NCBI GenBank assembly: GCA_904063045.1
Contig: CAJFCJ010000024.1
Location: 739,777-803,776 of the forward strand
Direction of reading: 5' to 3'
Length of the DNA: 64,000 nucleotides
Origin: Dimorphilus gyrociliatus
Lineage: Eukaryota > Animalia > Annelida
Shown here: in pieces, positions 40,800-61,097 of the stretch
Layout: the number at the start of each line of letters is the position of its first letter
Position numbering within the stretch: position 1 is the stretch's first letter
Position numbers and translations under genes: made by a program
The notes under the pieces: generated by a model
What the model saw: the letters and a program-made list of their open reading frames with translations, nothing else
Databases searched by the model: none
What the model was told of the DNA's origin: nothing

Positions 40800-43700
40800 A
40801 TGTTACGACTGGCTGCTTTGGCTGCCGTTCTAATTTATGTTGCCGGTTAGATAAGAAGCATGATTAATTAATACAATTTTTAATTAAATTTTATACATCT
40901 TTGATTAATTATGTGTTTTTTTCAATTTTTAAAGACGGACAAGTCCTAATAAATTGCGACTTTGAGAATAATCAATTTTGCCAAGGGACATTTCTTTTCC
41001 AGTCATGGGCAGTAGGTCGCTTCGGCTCGGATATTGGAACAATTGATACGGGTCCGGTAAATGCACCAGCTGGACGTGGAGGTAAACTAAGCACTTTTCA
41101 AGAAAACACAAGAATTTCTTTTTCTTTTGACTTTTTTTTCAATATCATAAAAAAAGGGCGGATACTATAAATATATATTGTAGAGTTTTTAGGTCATAAT
41201 CTACAATCCTTTCTCTCTTTCCGTCTTTCTCTCTTTATCTCTTTCCCTTTTCTTCCGAATCACTATTTTATGTTTCTTGAATATTATGTTTTACATTTTT
41301 TGATAAATTAAGTAATTTCAATACGATAAAATTTTGAGAAATAGGCAATTAATTCGATTGAAAAAGAAGAAATAGAAATTTTCCCACGTGATATACAATT
41401 TATTTCTATCTTATTCAAGTTTCTTGAGCAATAAAAGAAATAATAAGAAAATAAATTAATAAAAAAAGATATTTCTTCTTCTTTCTCTTCTTCTTCCTTC
41501 TCTTCCTCTTCATTTCTCTTTTTAGATAAAAGATAATATTTACGAGAAATTAAATGCAAACTAATAGATTAATTGATAATTTGTTTTCTATAAAGGTAAT
41601 TATTATGCCTACGTTACGTCGACAATCCCTGGAAATGTGGCCCGAATGAGAATAAACATAAATTCTGGTGCTTCGGTAAACAATTTTTGTTTGTCATTCT
41701 CATATAATGTATGGGGTCAGGATATTGGAGAATTTCGTGTTAAGGATAGTTCTGGTAGAAATATTTATTCACGGTCTAAAAGTAAGTTTAACACTTATTG
41801 ATTCATAATTAAGACAACATCTATAAAAGACAGCATAGACTGTATAAGGGCACACTCTTCCTTAAAGGCCTCTTTAATAACTTTTGGATTACTATAATTC
41901 ATCAGCTATTACCCTATCGCAAACTATACTGCATATATAAAACTGTTTTAATAGGTTAACCTCGAATAAACTGTATACATTGACTAAAAAGAGTCAACAA
42001 ACATAAAATAGTCCTACAACGCCCAAGATAAATAAAATTTTGAGTACTGCTTATTATGAGAGAAGAAAATAGAATGGTAACTTTGTCTTTCGGATCTTTA
42101 TTAATTGACGCTCTTTTATAGACAACTATGGATTTAGAGGAAATGGTAGATGGTATGATGTTCGTCAGAATGGTCAAACTGCAACCTTTATTGAATTTGA
42201 AGTTGAGACTGATGGTCAATATGCCGAGTTAGCCATTGATGACATTAGGGTTGTGGGTGGTGCTTGCACTCAACCAGCCCTTTTGCCGGCAGGTCCAACT
42301 TCTTTGTTCTACAATCCAACTTCTCAATTCATAAGTGGTTGGAGATCGTTGATAAATGAAAATTTTAATAACCAGCAATACAATTTTGCCAATCCATGGA
42401 CATGGACCAATTCAAACTCTGATCTATTCGTTGTTGGTACAGGTCCTAATAATGGAAGATCTAAGTACAGTGTCAACAGTTAGTATAAATGCCTAACGAT
42501 TCTTTTCATGTTAATAAATACACAATAACCTATTTTCAGACTATTATTTGTATACCAATTTCCAAAATATTCCTCAAAGTACCCAGGCTGCTTTTTCATC
42601 TCCAAACCTTAATAGCGGATCTTCTGCTGGATTCTTCAACTTCTACTATTACATTTACGGAAGACAAATGGGAAGAATGGAAATTTGGGCAGTTTCCGAT
42701 AACCAAAGAACCACTACTATTTTCACCAGACCTGCTCACGGTATGTTTGAATACTATTTGAATATGCTAATACTATTTTCAAAGTTAATACAAGCTAATT
42801 GAATATTTATACTTTCTTAGTCAATAACTATGTGGGAGAGAGAAGGTGGCAAAATATCTGCGTTAATCTACCCAGTAATACTAGATACTTTGTTGTCGTT
42901 GTTTGGAAAGGTGGTGACTTTTCTGAGTTCGGTTTCGATGCATTTACCTATGGCACTGGTGATGTATGTGCAGGTAAGATAAAATAATATTCTATATAAA
43001 ATTTATCTCATAAAAATACTTACACTAGTTCAAAGTGATGTACAAAACCCTCCTCCAAGACCTACGACTCCTGTTCCTGTACCTGTACCAGTGCCAGTAC
43101 CTGTACCAGTGCCAGTACCTGTACCAGTGCCAGTACCTGTACCAGTGCCAGTACCTGTACCAGTGCCAGTACCTGTACCAGTGCCAGTACCTGTACCAGT
43201 GCCAGTACCTGTACCAGTGCCAGTACCTGTACCAGTTCCAGTACCTGTACCAGTTCCAGTACCTGTACCTGTACCAGTACCAGTACCAGTACCAGTCCCA
43301 GTACCAGTACCAGTACCTGTACCAGTCCCAGTTCCAGTACCAGTTCCAGTACCAGTTCCAGTACCAGTTCCAGTACCAGTACCTGTACCAGTCCCAGTCC
43401 CAGTACCAGTCCCAGTCCCAGTACCAGTACCCGTACCAGTTCCGGTCCCAGTACCAGTTCCAGTGCCTGTTCCCGTTCCAGTGCCTGTGCCTGTTCCAGT
43501 GCCGGTACCTGTTCCAGTGCCTGTGCCTGCTCCAGTTCCAGTACCAGCTCCAGTGCCAGCACCTGCCCCTTCGCCTGGATCGCCAGGACATTATACACTA
43601 TGTGTGACAAAGGGAATTAGATGCTTTCAAAAAGTTAACCCTGGAAACAAACTTGATGAGATCATTGGATCAACTGGCCCTAGAGGTCGACAAGGTTTAC

Positions 43701-46150
43701 CAGGTCCACAAGGCTTTACAGGGAATATAGGTCCTGCTGGACCTGATGGACTTCAGGGTCCCCGTGGACCCTACGGATTACCTGGTGCTATTGGACCAGC
43801 CGGACCTTTGGGTGCAACAGGACCTGTAGGTCCAGAGGGTATTGCTGGCCCTCCAGGTGGTAGGGGCCCATTCGGAGCTACCGGCTTAAGAGGACTTCCA
43901 GGCGCAAAAGGATTACCTGGGGTACAAGGAGGGACAGGAAATCCGGGAAATCAAGGTCCAGTTGGGAATTTTGGTCCTCAAGGCCCTCAAGGTTTTACTG
44001 GTCCTAGGGGTATTCAAGGAAATATTGGTAATGTTGGTTCACGAGGCGTTGATGGCCCAAGAGGTAGGCAAGGTATACAAGGCCCTGCTGGTAGATCTGG
44101 CCTTCAAGGATTAGCTGGTGCTACTGGTTCATCTGGACCTATTGGCCCTCAAGGGCCTCCTGGAATCAGGGGATCACAAGGTCTTCCAGGATTACAAGGT
44201 ATGATAGGAAGAAGAGGCGCTGGAGGACCAATTGGTGTGGAAGGTGATACTGGATCAACAGGCGCTCAAGGTATTCGAGGACCTCAAGGAGGCCCCGGAC
44301 AGCCTGGACCAGTTGGTGAGCAGGGTGTCAAAGGCGTAGGAGGCCCTCGTGGGCCTCAAGGTCCCTTAGGTGTCCAAGGAGACCGAGGGGCAGTTGGACC
44401 TGGAGGTCTTCCTGGGGCAACTGGTCCTGCCGGACCTAGAGGTCCAATTGGTATTGAAGGCAAAGGAGGAGATACTGGACTTCCAGGGCCTGAAGGAATA
44501 TATGGGGCAAGTGGACCACCAGGACCTGAAGGCCCAGTGGGTGCTCCCGGTCCAAGAGGCTTTCAAGGAGAACAAGGCGCAACTGGTCCAAAAGGCACAA
44601 AAGGTGGTCCTGGAGATGTCGGCAAGAAAGGTCCTGAAGGACTTCAAGGGCCTCCGGGAGCTACTGGTTCTACTGGTTCTCGTGGCATACAGGGTAAAAA
44701 CTTTTTCATAATTACTTTCATATTTATCAATTTTATCAAACATTTAGGTGTACAAGGAATTCAAGGTCCTGTTGGTCTAAAAGGATTTACAGGGCTAGTT
44801 GGTCTTCCTGGTCCCGTCGGTCGACGAGGAAATCCTGGAATTAGTGGATTACGCGGAGAACCAGGATTTACTGGTGCAGTTGGTGGAACTGGCCTTCCAG
44901 GTCAGCAAGGACCTGATGGTCCTGTTGGAGATACAGGCCCACGAGGACCTCAGGGAGCTCGTGGTTTGCCTGGCCCTGCTGGTATAGATGGACTGCAAGG
45001 AACTGGTGGTGAAGTAGGGCCTCCAGGTGAGAAAGGCGTACAAGGAATCCAGGGTTCTATGGGAGCTACTGGAGATACTGGTCCTGATGGTAATAGAGGT
45101 AACACTGGTCAAAGTGGTCCAAGAGGTGTGATGGGAATTACAGGTAATTAAAATGAATAAAGCTTAACATAAAATTATAAGTATATTAACTAACACCTTA
45201 ACATGCTAGGTCCCCAAGGTGGTAAAGGAGTAGATGGTCCAAATGGCTTACCAGGCAGCATTGGAGCTCTAGGACCAAAGGGGGCTACAGGATTCCAAGG
45301 TCCACGTGGTTTAGCTGGAGGTCCAGGAGGTATTTACTCTCTGGAAAATGAATGTGAAAGAAACAATGGAGGCTGCGATCAAGTCTGCCACGATACTTAT
45401 GATGGATATTGTTGTGGATGTAATGCTGGATATAAGCTTCGTCCTCTTCCATCTCAATGTAACAGAGATAATTTAGACTGCTTTGAAAGTTTAACAAACG
45501 GTTATAATTGTGAATGTCGTATCGGAAATGGCCAAACCATAAGACTAAATGGAACAACATGCGATGGTTTGTTTCTGAGCATGCTTTTCTCTTCAAGTGA
45601 TTATATATTATTCATTTAACTTATTATTTCTTAGATATTGACGAATGTGCAAGTAACAACGGTGGATGCACACAAAATTGCATTAATAACCGTGGCAGCT
45701 TTACTTGCTCCTGCAATAATGGCTACAGATTGTCCAACGACGGTTTCTCTTGCTTAGGTGAGCTTTACTTTCTTTTTCTGCTGAATATATATTTCTACAT
45801 AGCTTCTGATTTCGTTAATAGATATCAACGAATGTGAAACAACTGGTAGAATTGTTTGTGGCTCTGCCATATGTCATAATACTCCAGGTAGTTTTACATG
45901 TGGTGCAGCTAACGCAGCATCTGGAGCTCTGGTAGGACAAGAAGGAGCTCTATCAGCAGCTGGTATTGGACTAGGTGAAATTATTACAATTACACTCGCT
46001 TGTGTAGTTGTGGTTGTTTTCATAAACGTCGCTGCCTTCTATGGTATTAAGCGTTTCATTAGATCAAGAAATAATAAGAAGAATATTCGAAATTGTGAAA
46101 TTGAATCCGTTTCAACTATTGCAGCAACCAATTGGCGAACTGTTGAATAA
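40800..46150 (+). CDS. Type I transmembrane collagen, 1316 aa: signal peptide, 2 MAM-like domains, (PV)76 tract, 171 Gly-X-Y, EGF/cbEGF repeats, TM, short tail; 11 exons (40800-40845, 40935-41081, 41596-41781, 42122-42469, 42540-42740, 42821-42973, 43029-44693, 44748-45143, 45210-45566, 45635-45757, 45822-46150)
   Basis: [15 protein letters not shown]; [36 protein letters not shown]; second MAM-like unit TGP..YYLY..FYYYIYG; uninterrupted Gly-X-Y; [12 protein letters not shown] and DINEC; [25 protein letters not shown] followed by KR. All 10 introns are GT-AG and phase 1. Confidence 0.88.
43070..43567 (+). repeat. Coding tandem repeat: 76 Pro-Val dipeptides then PA/PV; includes 8 perfect copies of the 18-mer CCTGTACCAGTGCCAGTA (43082-43225) plus 2 single-base variants
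   Basis: Read directly from the sequence; it explains the periodic ORFs in the other frames. Confidence 0.95.
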
Positions 46151-46733
46151 GTTCGCTATTAAATTAAAACAAATTAAATTTCAATATTTTTGGATGAAGT
46201 CTTATGAAATCAACGTTAAATAGCTTTTTGTTTTATATTCTTGAGGAAACCTAGCATTATCACTGTATATTTAGAAAGGAGCTAGAAGAGATCTATAAAT
46301 TTGGCAAATTTTTCCCTCATCCATTTTTTTTAATAAACGGACTGTTTATATTCTTAATTTTTTGTTAGCGTCTTCTAATTAAGAAGCTAAAACAATAAAA
46401 CACGTTCGAGATCCTTTGAGAAATTCTATTTTTATTTTAAGTCGAAATTTTGGCAACTTCTTTTTTTCTTAAATTTAATCGCTAAAAATCTTTAAAATTT
46501 TCCAAATAGATATTAACGATTCTTTTATTAGAAGTTAATAAAATACATACTTTATTTATGAATTTGATTTTCGAAATTTAAAAAGAATGCGGGAATAATA
46601 TTTAAATCTGGATCCGTATTCCTCTCTACAAATTGAAAATATAAAAATAATATCGATAGCTTTCCCTCTTTTCTATCTGATCATTTATGGAAATCTTCAT
46701 CCTCGAAGTTAAGAACATAGTTTCCACAATAAC

Positions 46734-47969
46734 ATGGCAGCCAAATTACCACCCGTTCCTCCTACACTTCGGTCGGTTCAGCACTATCTAAAAACGGCAA
46801 CTGAACACGATGGTCGTGATGCGGCTGTTAGCTATTATTGTTAGTAAATCGTCGCTTCGGTTGAAAATTTGACTGTTAATTAATCGATTAATTTTATTTT
46901 CATTTCTATTCTTTAGGTCGACTATATGCAGTTCAAAAATCTCTTCAAATTGATAAAAAATCACCTGACGCCGTAAAATTCATCACAACACTTATGGATC
47001 ATCTTGAACAGGTAAATTTTTTGTTTAACTATTTTACAAAAATTGCCTTCATAAGATAGTTTCCATTTCGAAAACAGTTGTCTTTTTATATAGATAGAAT
47101 GACTCAATTTTACATCTGCAAGCTTAAGTTTATTATTTCAACTTTTTATTGATGACTAACTGCTCTTTTTTTTAAAGGCCAAAAAGCAAAATGCAGACAA
47201 TGAAGCAATACACACTGAAACCATTGGTCATGCACACATTGAGCAGTATGCCCTAAAATTATTTTTATACGCGGATAATGAAGATCGATCTTCGAGATTT
47301 GGAAAGTAATAAAAAACTTATCTTTCTTTTTTAAATTATTCGAATAATTTGATTCATTACAATCTTTACAGAAATGTTGTAAAATCTTTTTACACGGCCG
47401 GTATGCTATTTGATGTTCTCGAAACTTTTGGAGAGCTAAATGACGATGTACATTTTTCTAAATAATCACTATTACTATTTTATTAATGTTCTTTAAATTT
47501 TCAGATTGAAAAAAATAGGAAATATGCTAAATGGAAAGCCACATATATACATAAATGCATTAAAGAGGGACTTCAACCACAACCTGGTCCACTAGGTAAA
47601 ATTTTTATTTAATGAACAGTTAGCAAATTAATAATTGAAAGTTGTTTAGATGAGGAAGAGCAGGAATTACATGGAGCGCCATCAGCACCAACATCGTCGT
47701 ATATTCCTCCAGACGATAGATCATCTCAATCGGCCACAGCTGCTGCTCCAACTCCCACTCCTCGAACAGCTAATAGCGTTGCCCCAACACAACCGGTGGA
47801 GTATACCCAATGGGTACCACCATCTTCTGGATCACTAAAGCCTAGTGATTTCGAGAAAGCCACTAAACAATGTAAGCACGCTATTAGTGCTATGCAGTAT
47901 GAGGATAGTGCCACTGCCGTTGAATGTCTTAATAAGGCTTTGAGATTGTTAACTACAGGAAAAGAGTAA
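46734..47969 (+). CDS. VTA1: Vacuolar protein sorting-associated protein VTA1 (ESCRT/VPS4 cofactor)
   Basis: LPPVPPTLRSVQHYLKTATEHD..VSYYCRLYA; ALKLFLYADNEDR; KYAKWKATYIH; C-terminal VSL domain (KHAISAMQYEDSATAVECLNKALRLLT). Confidence 0.95.
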
Positions 47970-58871: not shown

Positions 58872-61097
58872 ATGACATCTATAATCAGATTGAAGCCTTT
58901 TTCGGGTGTAAAAAGTGAATCCCCACCATGCTATCTTCTTCAAATCGATGAATGTCATATCTTACTAGACTGTGGGTGGGATGAACATTTCAGTATGGAC
59001 TATTTGAAGAGATTGAAAGAAAATTTAGATATTATAGATGCAGTTCTTATTTCTCATCCTGATCCTCATCATCTTGGCGCCCTACCCTATTTGGTAGGAA
59101 GATGTGGCCTAAATTGCCCAATATATGCAACTGTCCCTGTTTATAAGATGGGTCAAATGTTTTTATACGATTTATATCAATCTCGACATAGCTGTGAACA
59201 TTTTGAAATATTCACTTTGGACGATGTCGACGCTGCTTTCGAAAAAATTAAACAGCTCAAATATTTGCAAACTGTTGGCTTGAAAGGTAAAGGGCATGGT
59301 CTACAAATCACTCCTATACCTGCTGGTCACATGATTGGAGGAACAATATGGAAAATTGTAAAAGATGGTGAAGAAGAAATTTACTATGCTATTGACTTTA
59401 ACCATAAAAAAGAACGGCACTTAAATGGTTGTATTCTTGATGGAATAGTCAGGCCACATCTGTTTATTACCGACGCATTTAATGCTAATTATCAACAAAC
59501 AAGACGAAAGTTGCGCGATGAACAGTTACTAACTAGCATTATTCAAACTTTGCGAAATGATGGAAATGTTCTTATTACAATAGATACAGCAGGAAGATGT
59601 TTAGAGCTGGCTCATTTGCTTGATCAAATGTGGAGATCTCAGGAATCTGGACTCATGTGTTTCTCTCTAGCTATCTGCAACAATGTATCCTTTAACGTTG
59701 TAGAATTTGCGAAGTCTCAAGTAGAGTGGATGGCGGATAAAATAACTAGGGCTTTCGAAGATAATCGGACTAATCCCTTTCAATTTAAGCACTTGATGCT
59801 TTGCCATTCTCTACATGAATTAAATAAAGTACCCTCACCAAAAGTTGTTCTTGCCTCATCCCCTGATCTGGAGTCTGGATTCGCCAAAGATTTATTTATC
59901 TCATGGTCTTCAGACCCCAGGAATGTCATCATACTCACTAATAGAACCTCTCCAGGAACTTTAGCGAGAACATTAATTGATAAGCCAACTTCAACAGAAA
60001 TTACTGTTGAAATTAAAAGAAGGGAAAAATTGGAAGGAAAAGAACTGGAAGAATATAGGAAAAAAGAGCGCGAGCGTATTGCAGAAGAACAGAGACAAAA
60101 AGCTCTCACTTCCCAAAAAGAAAAAGAAGAATCATCTGACAGTGAAGATGTCGAAAAGGAAACAGCCTTCGAAAACAAATACGATCTACTTTTACCAAAA
60201 ATTGATCAGGAACATATATCATATTCTGGTCTACTGAAAATCTCTAAGCGAAGCCTACCAATGTTTCCCACATCGGAGGAGCGTTTGAAATGTTTAAAAT
60301 GGGATGATTATGGTGAGTTTATTCGACCTGAAGATTTTCTTATTTTTGACGAAAAAGAAGCTGAAGAGCCTATGGAGACAGAGGATGAGAATGCCGAACA
60401 ATCGGTGAATGATTATTCCGATCATCCCACTAAATGCATAGTAACTGATCAAACAATTCAAATAAGAGCCAAAGTAATGTACATAGATTTTGAGGGCAGA
60501 ACTGATGGAGAGAGTATGAGAAAAATTTTGGCTCAAATTAAGCCTCGGCAATTAATTCTCGTACATGGTGATAAATCTGCTACCGAAAATTTAGCTAACT
60601 ATTGCTCAAGTCAAAATTTGGTAAATGGAAACATTTTAACTCCAGATCTCTATGAGATTGTAGATACAACGACTGAGTCTCATATTTTCCAAGTTCGCAT
60701 GAAAGATTCTCTCGTGAGTGCTCTACAATTTGAAAAGACAAAAGATGTCGAAGTATCTTGGATTGATGCTATACTGGACTCAACCGCAATGGCTGATGAA
60801 GGAAAAGGAGACGATTTAGTTCAAAGAGATTCTGTTCCAACTCTCATCCCTGCTTATTCGTCTGATTGTGTTCAACCACATGGTCCCGTTTTTATTAATG
60901 AACCGAAACTATCTGAATTGAAGGAGGTAATAATGAAACAAGGTATTACAGCAGAATTCACAGGCGGTGTGTTAGTATGTGGGGGTAGTGTTGCTATTAA
61001 GAAGAATGAAAGTGGAAAATTAACTATTGAGGGAACAATTAACAGTGAATATTATAAAATACGTAGAATTTTATATTCACAATTTGCTATTGTTTGA
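58872..61097 (+). CDS. CPSF2: Cleavage and polyadenylation specificity factor 100 kDa subunit, intronless CDS, 741 aa
   Basis: MTSIIRLKPFSG..CYLLQIDECHILLDCGWD; LSHPD..HLGALPY; AGHMIGGTIWKI; DFNHKKERHLNG; beta-CASP; YIDFEGRTDGES; YYKIRRILYSQFAIV. Confidence 0.98.
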   Translation: MTSIIRLKPFSGVKSESPPCYLLQIDECHILLDCGWDEHFSMDYLKRLKENLDIIDAVLISHPDPHHLGALPYLVGRCGLNCPIYATVPVYKMGQMFLYDLYQSRHSCEHFEIFTLDDVDAAFEKIKQLKYLQTVGLKGKGHGLQITPIPAGHMIGGTIWKIVKDGEEEIYYAIDFNHKKERHLNGCILDGIVRPHLFITDAFNANYQQTRRKLRDEQLLTSIIQTLRNDGNVLITIDTAGRCLELAHLLDQMWRSQESGLMCFSLAICNNVSFNVVEFAKSQVEWMADKITRAFEDNRTNPFQFKHLMLCHSLHELNKVPSPKVVLASSPDLESGFAKDLFISWSSDPRNVIILTNRTSPGTLARTLIDKPTSTEITVEIKRREKLEGKELEEYRKKERERIAEEQRQKALTSQKEKEESSDSEDVEKETAFENKYDLLLPKIDQEHISYSGLLKISKRSLPMFPTSEERLKCLKWDDYGEFIRPEDFLIFDEKEAEEPMETEDENAEQSVNDYSDHPTKCIVTDQTIQIRAKVMYIDFEGRTDGESMRKILAQIKPRQLILVHGDKSATENLANYCSSQNLVNGNILTPDLYEIVDTTTESHIFQVRMKDSLVSALQFEKTKDVEVSWIDAILDSTAMADEGKGDDLVQRDSVPTLIPAYSSDCVQPHGPVFINEPKLSELKEVIMKQGITAEFTGGVLVCGGSVAIKKNESGKLTIEGTINSEYYKIRRILYSQFAIV

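Follow-up and report, generated by a model that had tools for sequence, protein, structure and literature searches.

The subject of this analysis is a collagen gene of the annelid Dimorphilus gyrociliatus, found at positions 40800-46150 of a 64,000-nucleotide stretch of genomic DNA (C24:739777-803776 of the 77.9-Mb assembly), hereafter called the window. The gene appears to be single, intact and under purifying selection, and it would encode a type I collagen held in the membrane by its C-terminal end, whose likeliest use would be that of a spacer or tether. Taken as a whole, we consider this reading reasonably probable, but its parts do not carry the same weight. We are highly confident of the gene and of its architecture as modelled, and a trimeric rod of type I topology is likely. 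The role of tether or spacer is put forward more tentatively; any function given to the protein is a guess. To our knowledge, every textbook membrane collagen is of type II, and folding of these proteins is therefore taken to proceed from the N-terminal end, next to the membrane. In the protein considered here, the membrane anchor would lie at the opposite end of the chain.

The gene model was rebuilt from the three reading frames of the genomic DNA between 40780 and 46200. Eleven exons (E1 to E11) on the + strand give a coding sequence of 3960 nucleotides, corresponding to 1319 amino acids, with no stop or frameshift. The ten introns, 54 to 514 nucleotides long, are all of the GT..AG type and all in phase 1. 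The stop codon (46148-46150) is followed by an AATAAA signal at 46332-46337. GC content is 44-47% within the collagen gene and about 27-33% outside it, the window being AT-rich eukaryotic DNA. Immediately downstream, a homologue of Vta1 (LIP5) is found at 46734-47969 on the + strand (Pfam Vta1_C, 51 bits). Only about 580 bp separate the collagen stop from the Vta1 start and, because Vta1 begins at 46734, there is no space for an additional 3′ exon.

From the N- to the C-terminal end, the predicted protein is made of a signal peptide, two MAM domains, a Pro-Val (PV) tract, a junction with a C-x6-C motif, 171 Gly-X-Y triplets, an EGF module, an atypical EGF module, a calcium-binding EGF (cbEGF), a truncated cbEGF, a transmembrane (TM) segment and a short tail (Table 1). 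This layout is largely the one proposed in the initial annotation of the window, which had listed an N-terminal signal peptide, two MAM-like domains, a Pro-Val/Ala tract of 166 residues, 171 uninterrupted triplets, EGF and cbEGF modules, a single TM segment with a tail of about 35 residues, type I topology, and ten phase 1 introns in a gene born from exon shuffling. The tract itself stands, although its length has to be corrected to 168 residues; the tail counts 33. Exon 1 encodes a predicted signal peptide and has an equivalent in the paralogues, and the symmetric 1-1 exons fit exon shuffling. The other items were recovered in the rebuilt model and are considered in turn below. Pfam and all other searches were run exon by exon.

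The evidence that all these parts belong together comes from paralogues. In the whole genome, E4 matches just two other loci, on C1 and C5, here called L001 and L002. The same two loci are also the best matches to the EGF pair of E9 and to E11, with the same order and spacing at both, and each carries the full series of signal peptide, MAM, MAM, PV tract, C-x6-C, collagen, EGF modules, TM segment and tail. Several introns of the window gene are lacking in these relatives. In L001 (3136-4911), the C-terminal part of the second MAM domain, 130 residues of PV tract and 116 Gly-X-Y triplets are read in one open frame. In L002 (6159-7100), one open frame runs from the last part of the helix through the four EGF-type modules and the TM segment to the tail. 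In L006, an orthologue of L001 type, E5, E6 and E7 are fused in one exon. Such intron losses act like natural cDNAs, and the MAM and collagen-EGF-TM parts are therefore judged to belong to one gene. The window gene and L001 are 45-63% identical in every exon, and their helices are of nearly equal length (171 and about 173 triplets, respectively), with the same numbers of triplets in E8 and E9. The initial annotation had left the paralogues to be counted. The architecture is no isolated case: the D. gyrociliatus genome holds three MAM-headed genes, of which the window gene is one, and these are part of a larger collagen-EGF family.

Recognition of the MAM domains required some care. With the Pfam MAM profile (PF00629), E5 alone gives 25.3 bits (E = 1.6e-5), under the cut-off of 26.4, and E3 alone gives 13.3 bits (E = 0.07); a scan of the genome returned a match at C24:782306-782509, inside the region of the second MAM domain. 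A custom hidden Markov model (HMM) was built from 150 MAM repeats taken out of the search matches. On this model, the exons tile two MAM domains collinearly, the C-terminal (A/S)-I-D-D-I ... C motif included. For the first domain (MAM1), E2 corresponds to positions 1-9, E3 to 46-97 and the N-terminal part of E4 to 125-157; for the second (MAM2), the C-terminal part of E4 corresponds to positions 19-26, E5 to 46-108 and E6 to 113-134. The matches of E2, of the C-terminal part of E4 (domain score -2.5 bits) and of E6 are weak. With hhalign, the alignment of E4 matched a tandem-MAM protein across the boundary of two MAM domains, from the last part of the first through the linker into the beginning of the second (E = 2.4e-5), and the E4 profile matches multi-MAM proteins at the AIDDI motif. 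In L006, where E5 and E6 are naturally fused, the Pfam MAM score reaches 39.6 bits over profile positions 41-157, above the cut-off. At the level of sequence, the two MAM domains are thus real but divergent, MAM2 being devoid of the N-terminal Cys pair and left with two cysteines. Intron positions are equivalent on the MAM profile in MAM1 and MAM2, which suggests that the pair arose by internal duplication of a three-exon unit.

The PV tract, with Pro at every second position, is encoded by an 18-bp unit present in 27.4 copies with 87% match (43079-43565). At the same place, the tract has 130 residues in L001 and about 36 in L002, the range across paralogues and orthologues being 36-130 residues, and the spacer is probably polymorphic in length and liable to be misassembled. 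The C-x6-C junction motif that follows is conserved in the window gene, L001, L002 and in L003, an orthologue of L002 type. Next comes the helix, which belongs to the collagen superfamily by its repeat (PF01391, 155 and 74.9 bits for a cut-off of 27.2). Recounting gave the same 171 uninterrupted triplets as before, distributed as 114+44+13 over three exons, with Gly kept over both splice junctions; Pro occupies 31% of the X positions and 14% of the Y positions. Intron 7 (44694-44747), which is located within the helix region, is 54 nucleotides long, in frame and stop-free. If retained, it would add 18 mostly hydrophobic residues inside the triple helix, a possible alternative isoform.

Between the helix and the membrane, four EGF-type modules are found, with Pfam matches in E9, E10 and E11. 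E9 gives 32.6 bits with FXa_inhibition, slightly below the cut-off of 33.4 bits. Its EGF pair has 42 invariant columns in the alignment, and the conserved NGT of the atypical module is the sole N-glycosylation sequon of the protein. E10 scores as a calcium-binding EGF (PF07645) above the cut-off of 27 bits, and E11 gives 24.1 bits with EGF_CA over profile positions 2-28. The number of cysteines in the ectodomain is odd (29). The TM segment, the sole hydrophobic span besides the signal exon, has a mean Kyte-Doolittle hydropathy of 2.78 in its best 19-residue window and is followed by basic residues (KRFIRSR). A signal-like exon 1 and a C-terminal TM segment with basic residues after it are what a type I protein would have, and type I topology is predicted on this ground. 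Tails of the L001 and L002 types are longer than that of the window protein and end in ...P-x-ET-x-P-(L/M/I). A stretch F-D/N-S-x-M-L/F-K-x-G-x-x-R-x-D ... P-x-ET-x-P-L/M/I is conserved in them (L001:6118-6552, L002:6159-7100 and L003:4246-4896) and is absent from the window gene and its orthologue; no known motif was noticed in this stretch.

Each of the three paralogues has an orthologue in contigs of public sequencing runs from relatives. For the L002 type a complete gene was recovered (L003), for the L001 type the 5′ half (L006), and for the window gene the 3′ half (L010). The last of these was assembled from a Tara Pacific coral long-read metagenome (run ERR14224704); it keeps intact frames, the TM segment, the short tail and a syntenic downstream Vta1. 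Between the window gene and L010, summed exon by exon over 605 codons, nonsynonymous divergence (dN) is 0.25 and synonymous divergence (dS) 1.35, giving a dN/dS ratio of 0.19. The ratio is lowest in E9 (0.09) and amounts to 0.17 in E11. The comparison is that of an intact gene under purifying selection.

Table 1. Exons and predicted features of the collagen gene, in window coordinates.
Feature	Position	Strand	Remarks
Exons E1-E4	40800-40845, 40935-41081, 41596-41781, 42122-42478	+	
Exons E5-E8	42540-42740, 42821-42973, 43029-44693, 44748-45143	+	
Exons E9-E11	45210-45566, 45635-45757, 45822-46150	+	Stop codon included
Start codon and predicted signal peptide (exon 1)	40800-40845	+	Upstream in-frame stop; GTTAGA donor; paralogue equivalents
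MAM domain 1, 4 Cys	40935-42267	+	E2 (40935-41081), E3 (41596-41781), first 48 codons of E4 (42122-42267)
Linker and MAM domain 2, 2 Cys	42268-42973	+	Rest of E4 (to 42478), E5, E6
Pro-Val (then Pro-Ala/Ser) tract, 168 residues	43070-43573	+	In E7
Non-collagenous junction, Y-x-L-C-x-K-x-G-x-R-C-F-Q-K ... I-I-G-S/A-T (C-x6-C)	43574-43666	+	
Collagen triple-helix region	43667-45328	+	E7 (to 44693), E8 (44748-45143), E9 (45210-45328)
FXa-type EGF (NNGGC ... DTYDGYCC) and atypical 4-Cys module ending NGTTC	45329-45566	+	11 Cys in total
Calcium-binding EGF (exon 10)	45635-45757	+	EGF_CA 35.5 bits, FXa_inhibition 46.2 bits
Truncated cbEGF (DINEC..., first 4 Cys) and Ala/Gly-rich linker to the membrane	45822-45979	+	
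Predicted transmembrane segment, 23 residues	45980-46048	+	Kept in orthologue L010
Predicted cytoplasmic tail, 33 residues, and stop codon	46049-46150	+	Same short tail in L010

Elsewhere in the window, at 58872-61097 on the + strand, an intronless open reading frame of 741 amino acids may encode subunit 2 of the cleavage and polyadenylation factor (CPSF100).

The architecture was searched for more widely. With the E4 profile, HMMER returned 107 matches among 1.84 billion representatives. They were mostly multi-MAM proteins, and none contained six or more consecutive Gly-X-Y triplets; just two exon-sized fragments of the family were obtained. The absence of a MAM and collagen combination from these representatives is weak evidence because the window's own protein is also missing there. 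The finding of a MAM head joined to collagen only in the Dimorphilus group has to be read with the same caution. A word search with the PV and collagen frame yielded generic collagen-like matches, mostly bacterial and about 40% identical, and was uninformative. With the EGF pair of E9, the single candidate was the orthologue L010. With the C-terminal module of L002, the results were dominated by fibulin-5, SCUBE and EFEMP1, but were useful for Owenia P0278 and Watersipora P0266. Searching the sequences of the PDB retrieved generic EGF matches only (ADGRE5, LRP4, LDLR, thrombomodulin, fibrillin), and none for the MAM linker. An AlphaFold2 model of the EGF pair, computed from five sequences, had a mean predicted local distance difference test (pLDDT) score of 56, too poor for use. 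In the ESM Atlas, the nearest named cluster to the C-terminal module was CCBE1, with a score of 0.79, which is a lead only, below the level of evidence. Finally, the literature searched yielded no description of a MAM-collagen-EGF protein or of a collagen whose TM segment is C-terminal, in line with the initial annotation, which knew of no described family with such an architecture.

The C-terminal module is found in other collagens. In D. gyrociliatus, the EGF pair of E9 matches four places on contig C8, where at least four long collagen genes lie on both strands (G000:C8:876000-915999; L090-L093). All of them end in an NNGGC EGF, an atypical module ending in NGTxC, and one or more cbEGF modules; in two of them, a TM segment could be seen behind this end. 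The C8 genes showed neither a MAM nor a PV head. One of them, on L090, has a signal-like start, a C-x6-C motif (STCYKDGAIC) and at least 415 triplets in uninterrupted runs. In Owenia fusiformis, CAH1796782.1 (P0349, 'unnamed protein product, partial') shows about 60 Gly-X-Thr-rich triplets, four modules, a TM segment and a tail. It is 35% identical to the C-terminal module of L002 type over 272 residues, from the collagen end to the TM segment (E = 2e-39), and 32% identical to E9 of the window gene (E = 2e-14). The collagen part of this protein and of P0278 (CAH1796781.1) is almost wholly Gly-X-Thr (GPT, GST, GAT, GQT). In the bryozoan Watersipora subatra, XP_067937017.1 ('matrilin-2-like') has EGF modules and a TM segment after just three triplets. 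Two metagenome contigs, L011 and L055, also contain collagen exons followed by EGF modules, L011 through the atypical EGF only. L055 (481-12366; JGI Ga0056128_1000232) encodes EGF modules after a collagen part of at least 390 Gly-X-Y triplets, then a cbEGF and a TM segment with RRRRR behind it. It is a probable host-animal gene, and looks like another C-terminally anchored collagen.

The order of collagen end, NNGGC EGF, NGTxC module with four cysteines, one or more cbEGF, TM segment and tail is found in the window gene, L001, L002, L003, L010 and P0349. By these sequence features, an unnamed annelid collagen-EGF family shares its C-terminal module with the window gene. The C8 genes may be the long matrix or cuticle collagens of the worm, made as type I membrane proteins. 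A broader proposal can be formulated, in which an undescribed annelid, perhaps lophotrochozoan, family of type I membrane-made collagens would use the EGF-TM module in place of registration by a C-propeptide or a coiled coil. The long cuticle or body-wall collagens would belong to this family, and its MAM- and PV-headed members would be cell-matrix tethers. In this full extent, the proposal is speculative and we doubt that all of it will hold.

How the window protein might be assembled can be imagined as follows. The signal peptide would send the N-terminus into the lumen of the endoplasmic reticulum, and the C-terminal TM segment would halt transfer. Three chains would then meet at the membrane by means of their EGF modules and TM segments, and the helix would zip from its C-terminal to its N-terminal end, as in fibrillar collagens. 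At the far end, the conserved C-x6-C junction would lock the chains by interchain disulfides. Calculated from the number of residues at 0.29 nm each, the helical rod would be about 150 nm long, and the PV tract, if extended, would add up to about 50 nm per arm. The tip of the rod would thus bear three stiff Pro-Val arms, each holding two MAM domains. The likeliest use of such an object would be that of a long spacer or tether running from the apical or basal cell surface to the matrix, which could be the cuticle or the basal lamina; the MAM heads would serve for binding or self-association at the far end.

Several considerations weigh against this scheme. That the chains trimerise, are hydroxylated and become exposed on the cell is assumed from what is generally known of collagens, and no recognisable trimerisation domain (coiled coil, C1q or NC1) was found in the protein. 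Both MAM domains score under the Pfam threshold, with exons scored singly. The short cytoplasmic tail has no known motif and so gives no sign of a cytoskeletal link. Finally, the head-less relatives suggest that the family may consist of matrix collagens made as membrane-bound precursors. If so, the window protein would itself be made in membrane-bound form and would give rise to a secreted collagen of the matrix or cuticle. Its EGF-TM end would register the three chains like a C-propeptide and be cut off later, and the MAM-PV-collagen part would join the matrix. On C8, at least four head-less collagen genes of much greater length indeed finish with the same C-terminal module, one of them having at least 415 triplets. 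In addition, Owenia P0349 has Thr at most Y positions, a composition reportedly shared by vent-worm cuticle collagen, and shedding is a known fate of the type II membrane collagens. The Alvinella genome paper also lists very long annelid collagens, without mention of EGF or TM ends (PMC12403961). However, no R-x-K/R-R furin site occurs anywhere in the window protein, which led us to reject furin shedding of the kind seen in type II collagens, and no cleavage site or soluble form is known. Moreover, the TM segment and the short tail are conserved in L010, with the dN/dS value given above for E11. A precursor destined for the matrix is the main rival reading; taken by itself it is less probable than not, yet it is about as likely as the role of tether or adhesion antenna proposed in the initial annotation.

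The layout of the predicted protein, with a membrane or oligomer anchor, a collagen stalk and globular heads, is also generally that of pattern-recognition or scavenger-type receptors. MAM domains would then replace the SRCR or C-type lectin heads on a trimeric collagen stalk, and the existence of several paralogues with variable stalks and spacers could be understood in these terms. As points against such a receptor, no immune-type head domain was noticed, nor any signalling or endocytosis motif in the tail, and the heads are conserved between paralogues at 45-63% identity and not hypervariable; we hold it to be quite improbable. There is also the chance, raised in part by the initial annotation, that neighbouring MAM and collagen-EGF-TM genes were read as one, or that the locus is a pseudogene. 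In the window, the connection between MAM2 and the PV exon across intron 6 is indeed deduced from splice signals alone. Checked at the DNA level, the alternative of separate genes runs against the exon fusions and the collinearity of the paralogues, the same MAM2-PV junction lying inside a single exon in L001 and L006. Ten canonical phase 1 introns, 3960 nucleotides free of stops and frameshifts, a dN/dS ratio of 0.19 and three collinear paralogues likewise argue against an artefact of either kind, which was rejected as close to refuted. On balance, we thus favour a C-terminally anchored type I collagen made from one gene.

If this is true, a conserved family anchored by its C-terminal end would represent an independent way of setting a collagen rod on the cell surface. 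It would fill a gap, as neither annelids nor molluscs yielded any MACIT (PMC4678570). It would also provide a natural case of a collagen that folds from its C-terminal end, like the fibrillar ones, with this starting point placed at the membrane. The near-constant length of the helix between paralogues, combined with a PV spacer of variable length, suggests a molecular ruler for cell-matrix distance. The connection with the long head-less collagens could also be informative about the assembly of annelid cuticle collagen.

Comparison with known systems brings out both shared and distinct features. Extracellular MAM domains occur in meprins, RPTP mu/kappa, neuropilins and nephronectin/EGFL6, the last also combining EGF and MAM, but these proteins have no collagen helix. 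In those surface proteins, MAM domains mediate oligomerisation or homophilic adhesion. CCBE1, like the window protein, combines an FXa-type EGF, cbEGF and collagen repeats. It is a small secreted protein, with its EGF modules N-terminal of two short collagen stretches, and is not known to carry a TM segment or a MAM domain. The window protein departs from this description of CCBE1, its order being collagen, EGF modules and TM segment. Class A scavenger receptors, MARCO and collectins show the working layout that it would have, a trimeric collagen stalk with distal globular heads. However, they are type II or soluble and have a coiled-coil neck and SRCR or C-type lectin heads; no sequence kinship to them was seen beyond the Gly-X-Y repeat.

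The type II membrane collagens (XIII, XXIII, XXV and XVII, and COL-99 of C. elegans) cross the membrane once, with a short end in the cytosol and a long collagenous ectodomain standing off the cell, as predicted here. By definition, MACITs combine type II topology with interrupted helices and carry a C-terminal motif (PMC4678570); the type II topology agrees with what the initial annotation had stated of the well-known membrane collagens. Judged from sequence, the window protein would have the opposite topology. Its helix is single and uninterrupted, unlike the COL1-3 domains of MACITs with their NC1-4 interruptions (PMC4678570), and, in further contrast to MACITs, it has EGF modules between helix and membrane, a MAM tip and no furin site. 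The C-terminal module of the window gene recurs, with its parts in unchanged order, in the Owenia protein CAH1796782.1 and in the C8 cluster. Neither a MAM nor a PV head is seen in the Owenia model, whose N-terminus is truncated; the C8 genes differ from the window gene in that a signal-like N-terminus and a C-x6-C motif lead straight into a much longer helix.

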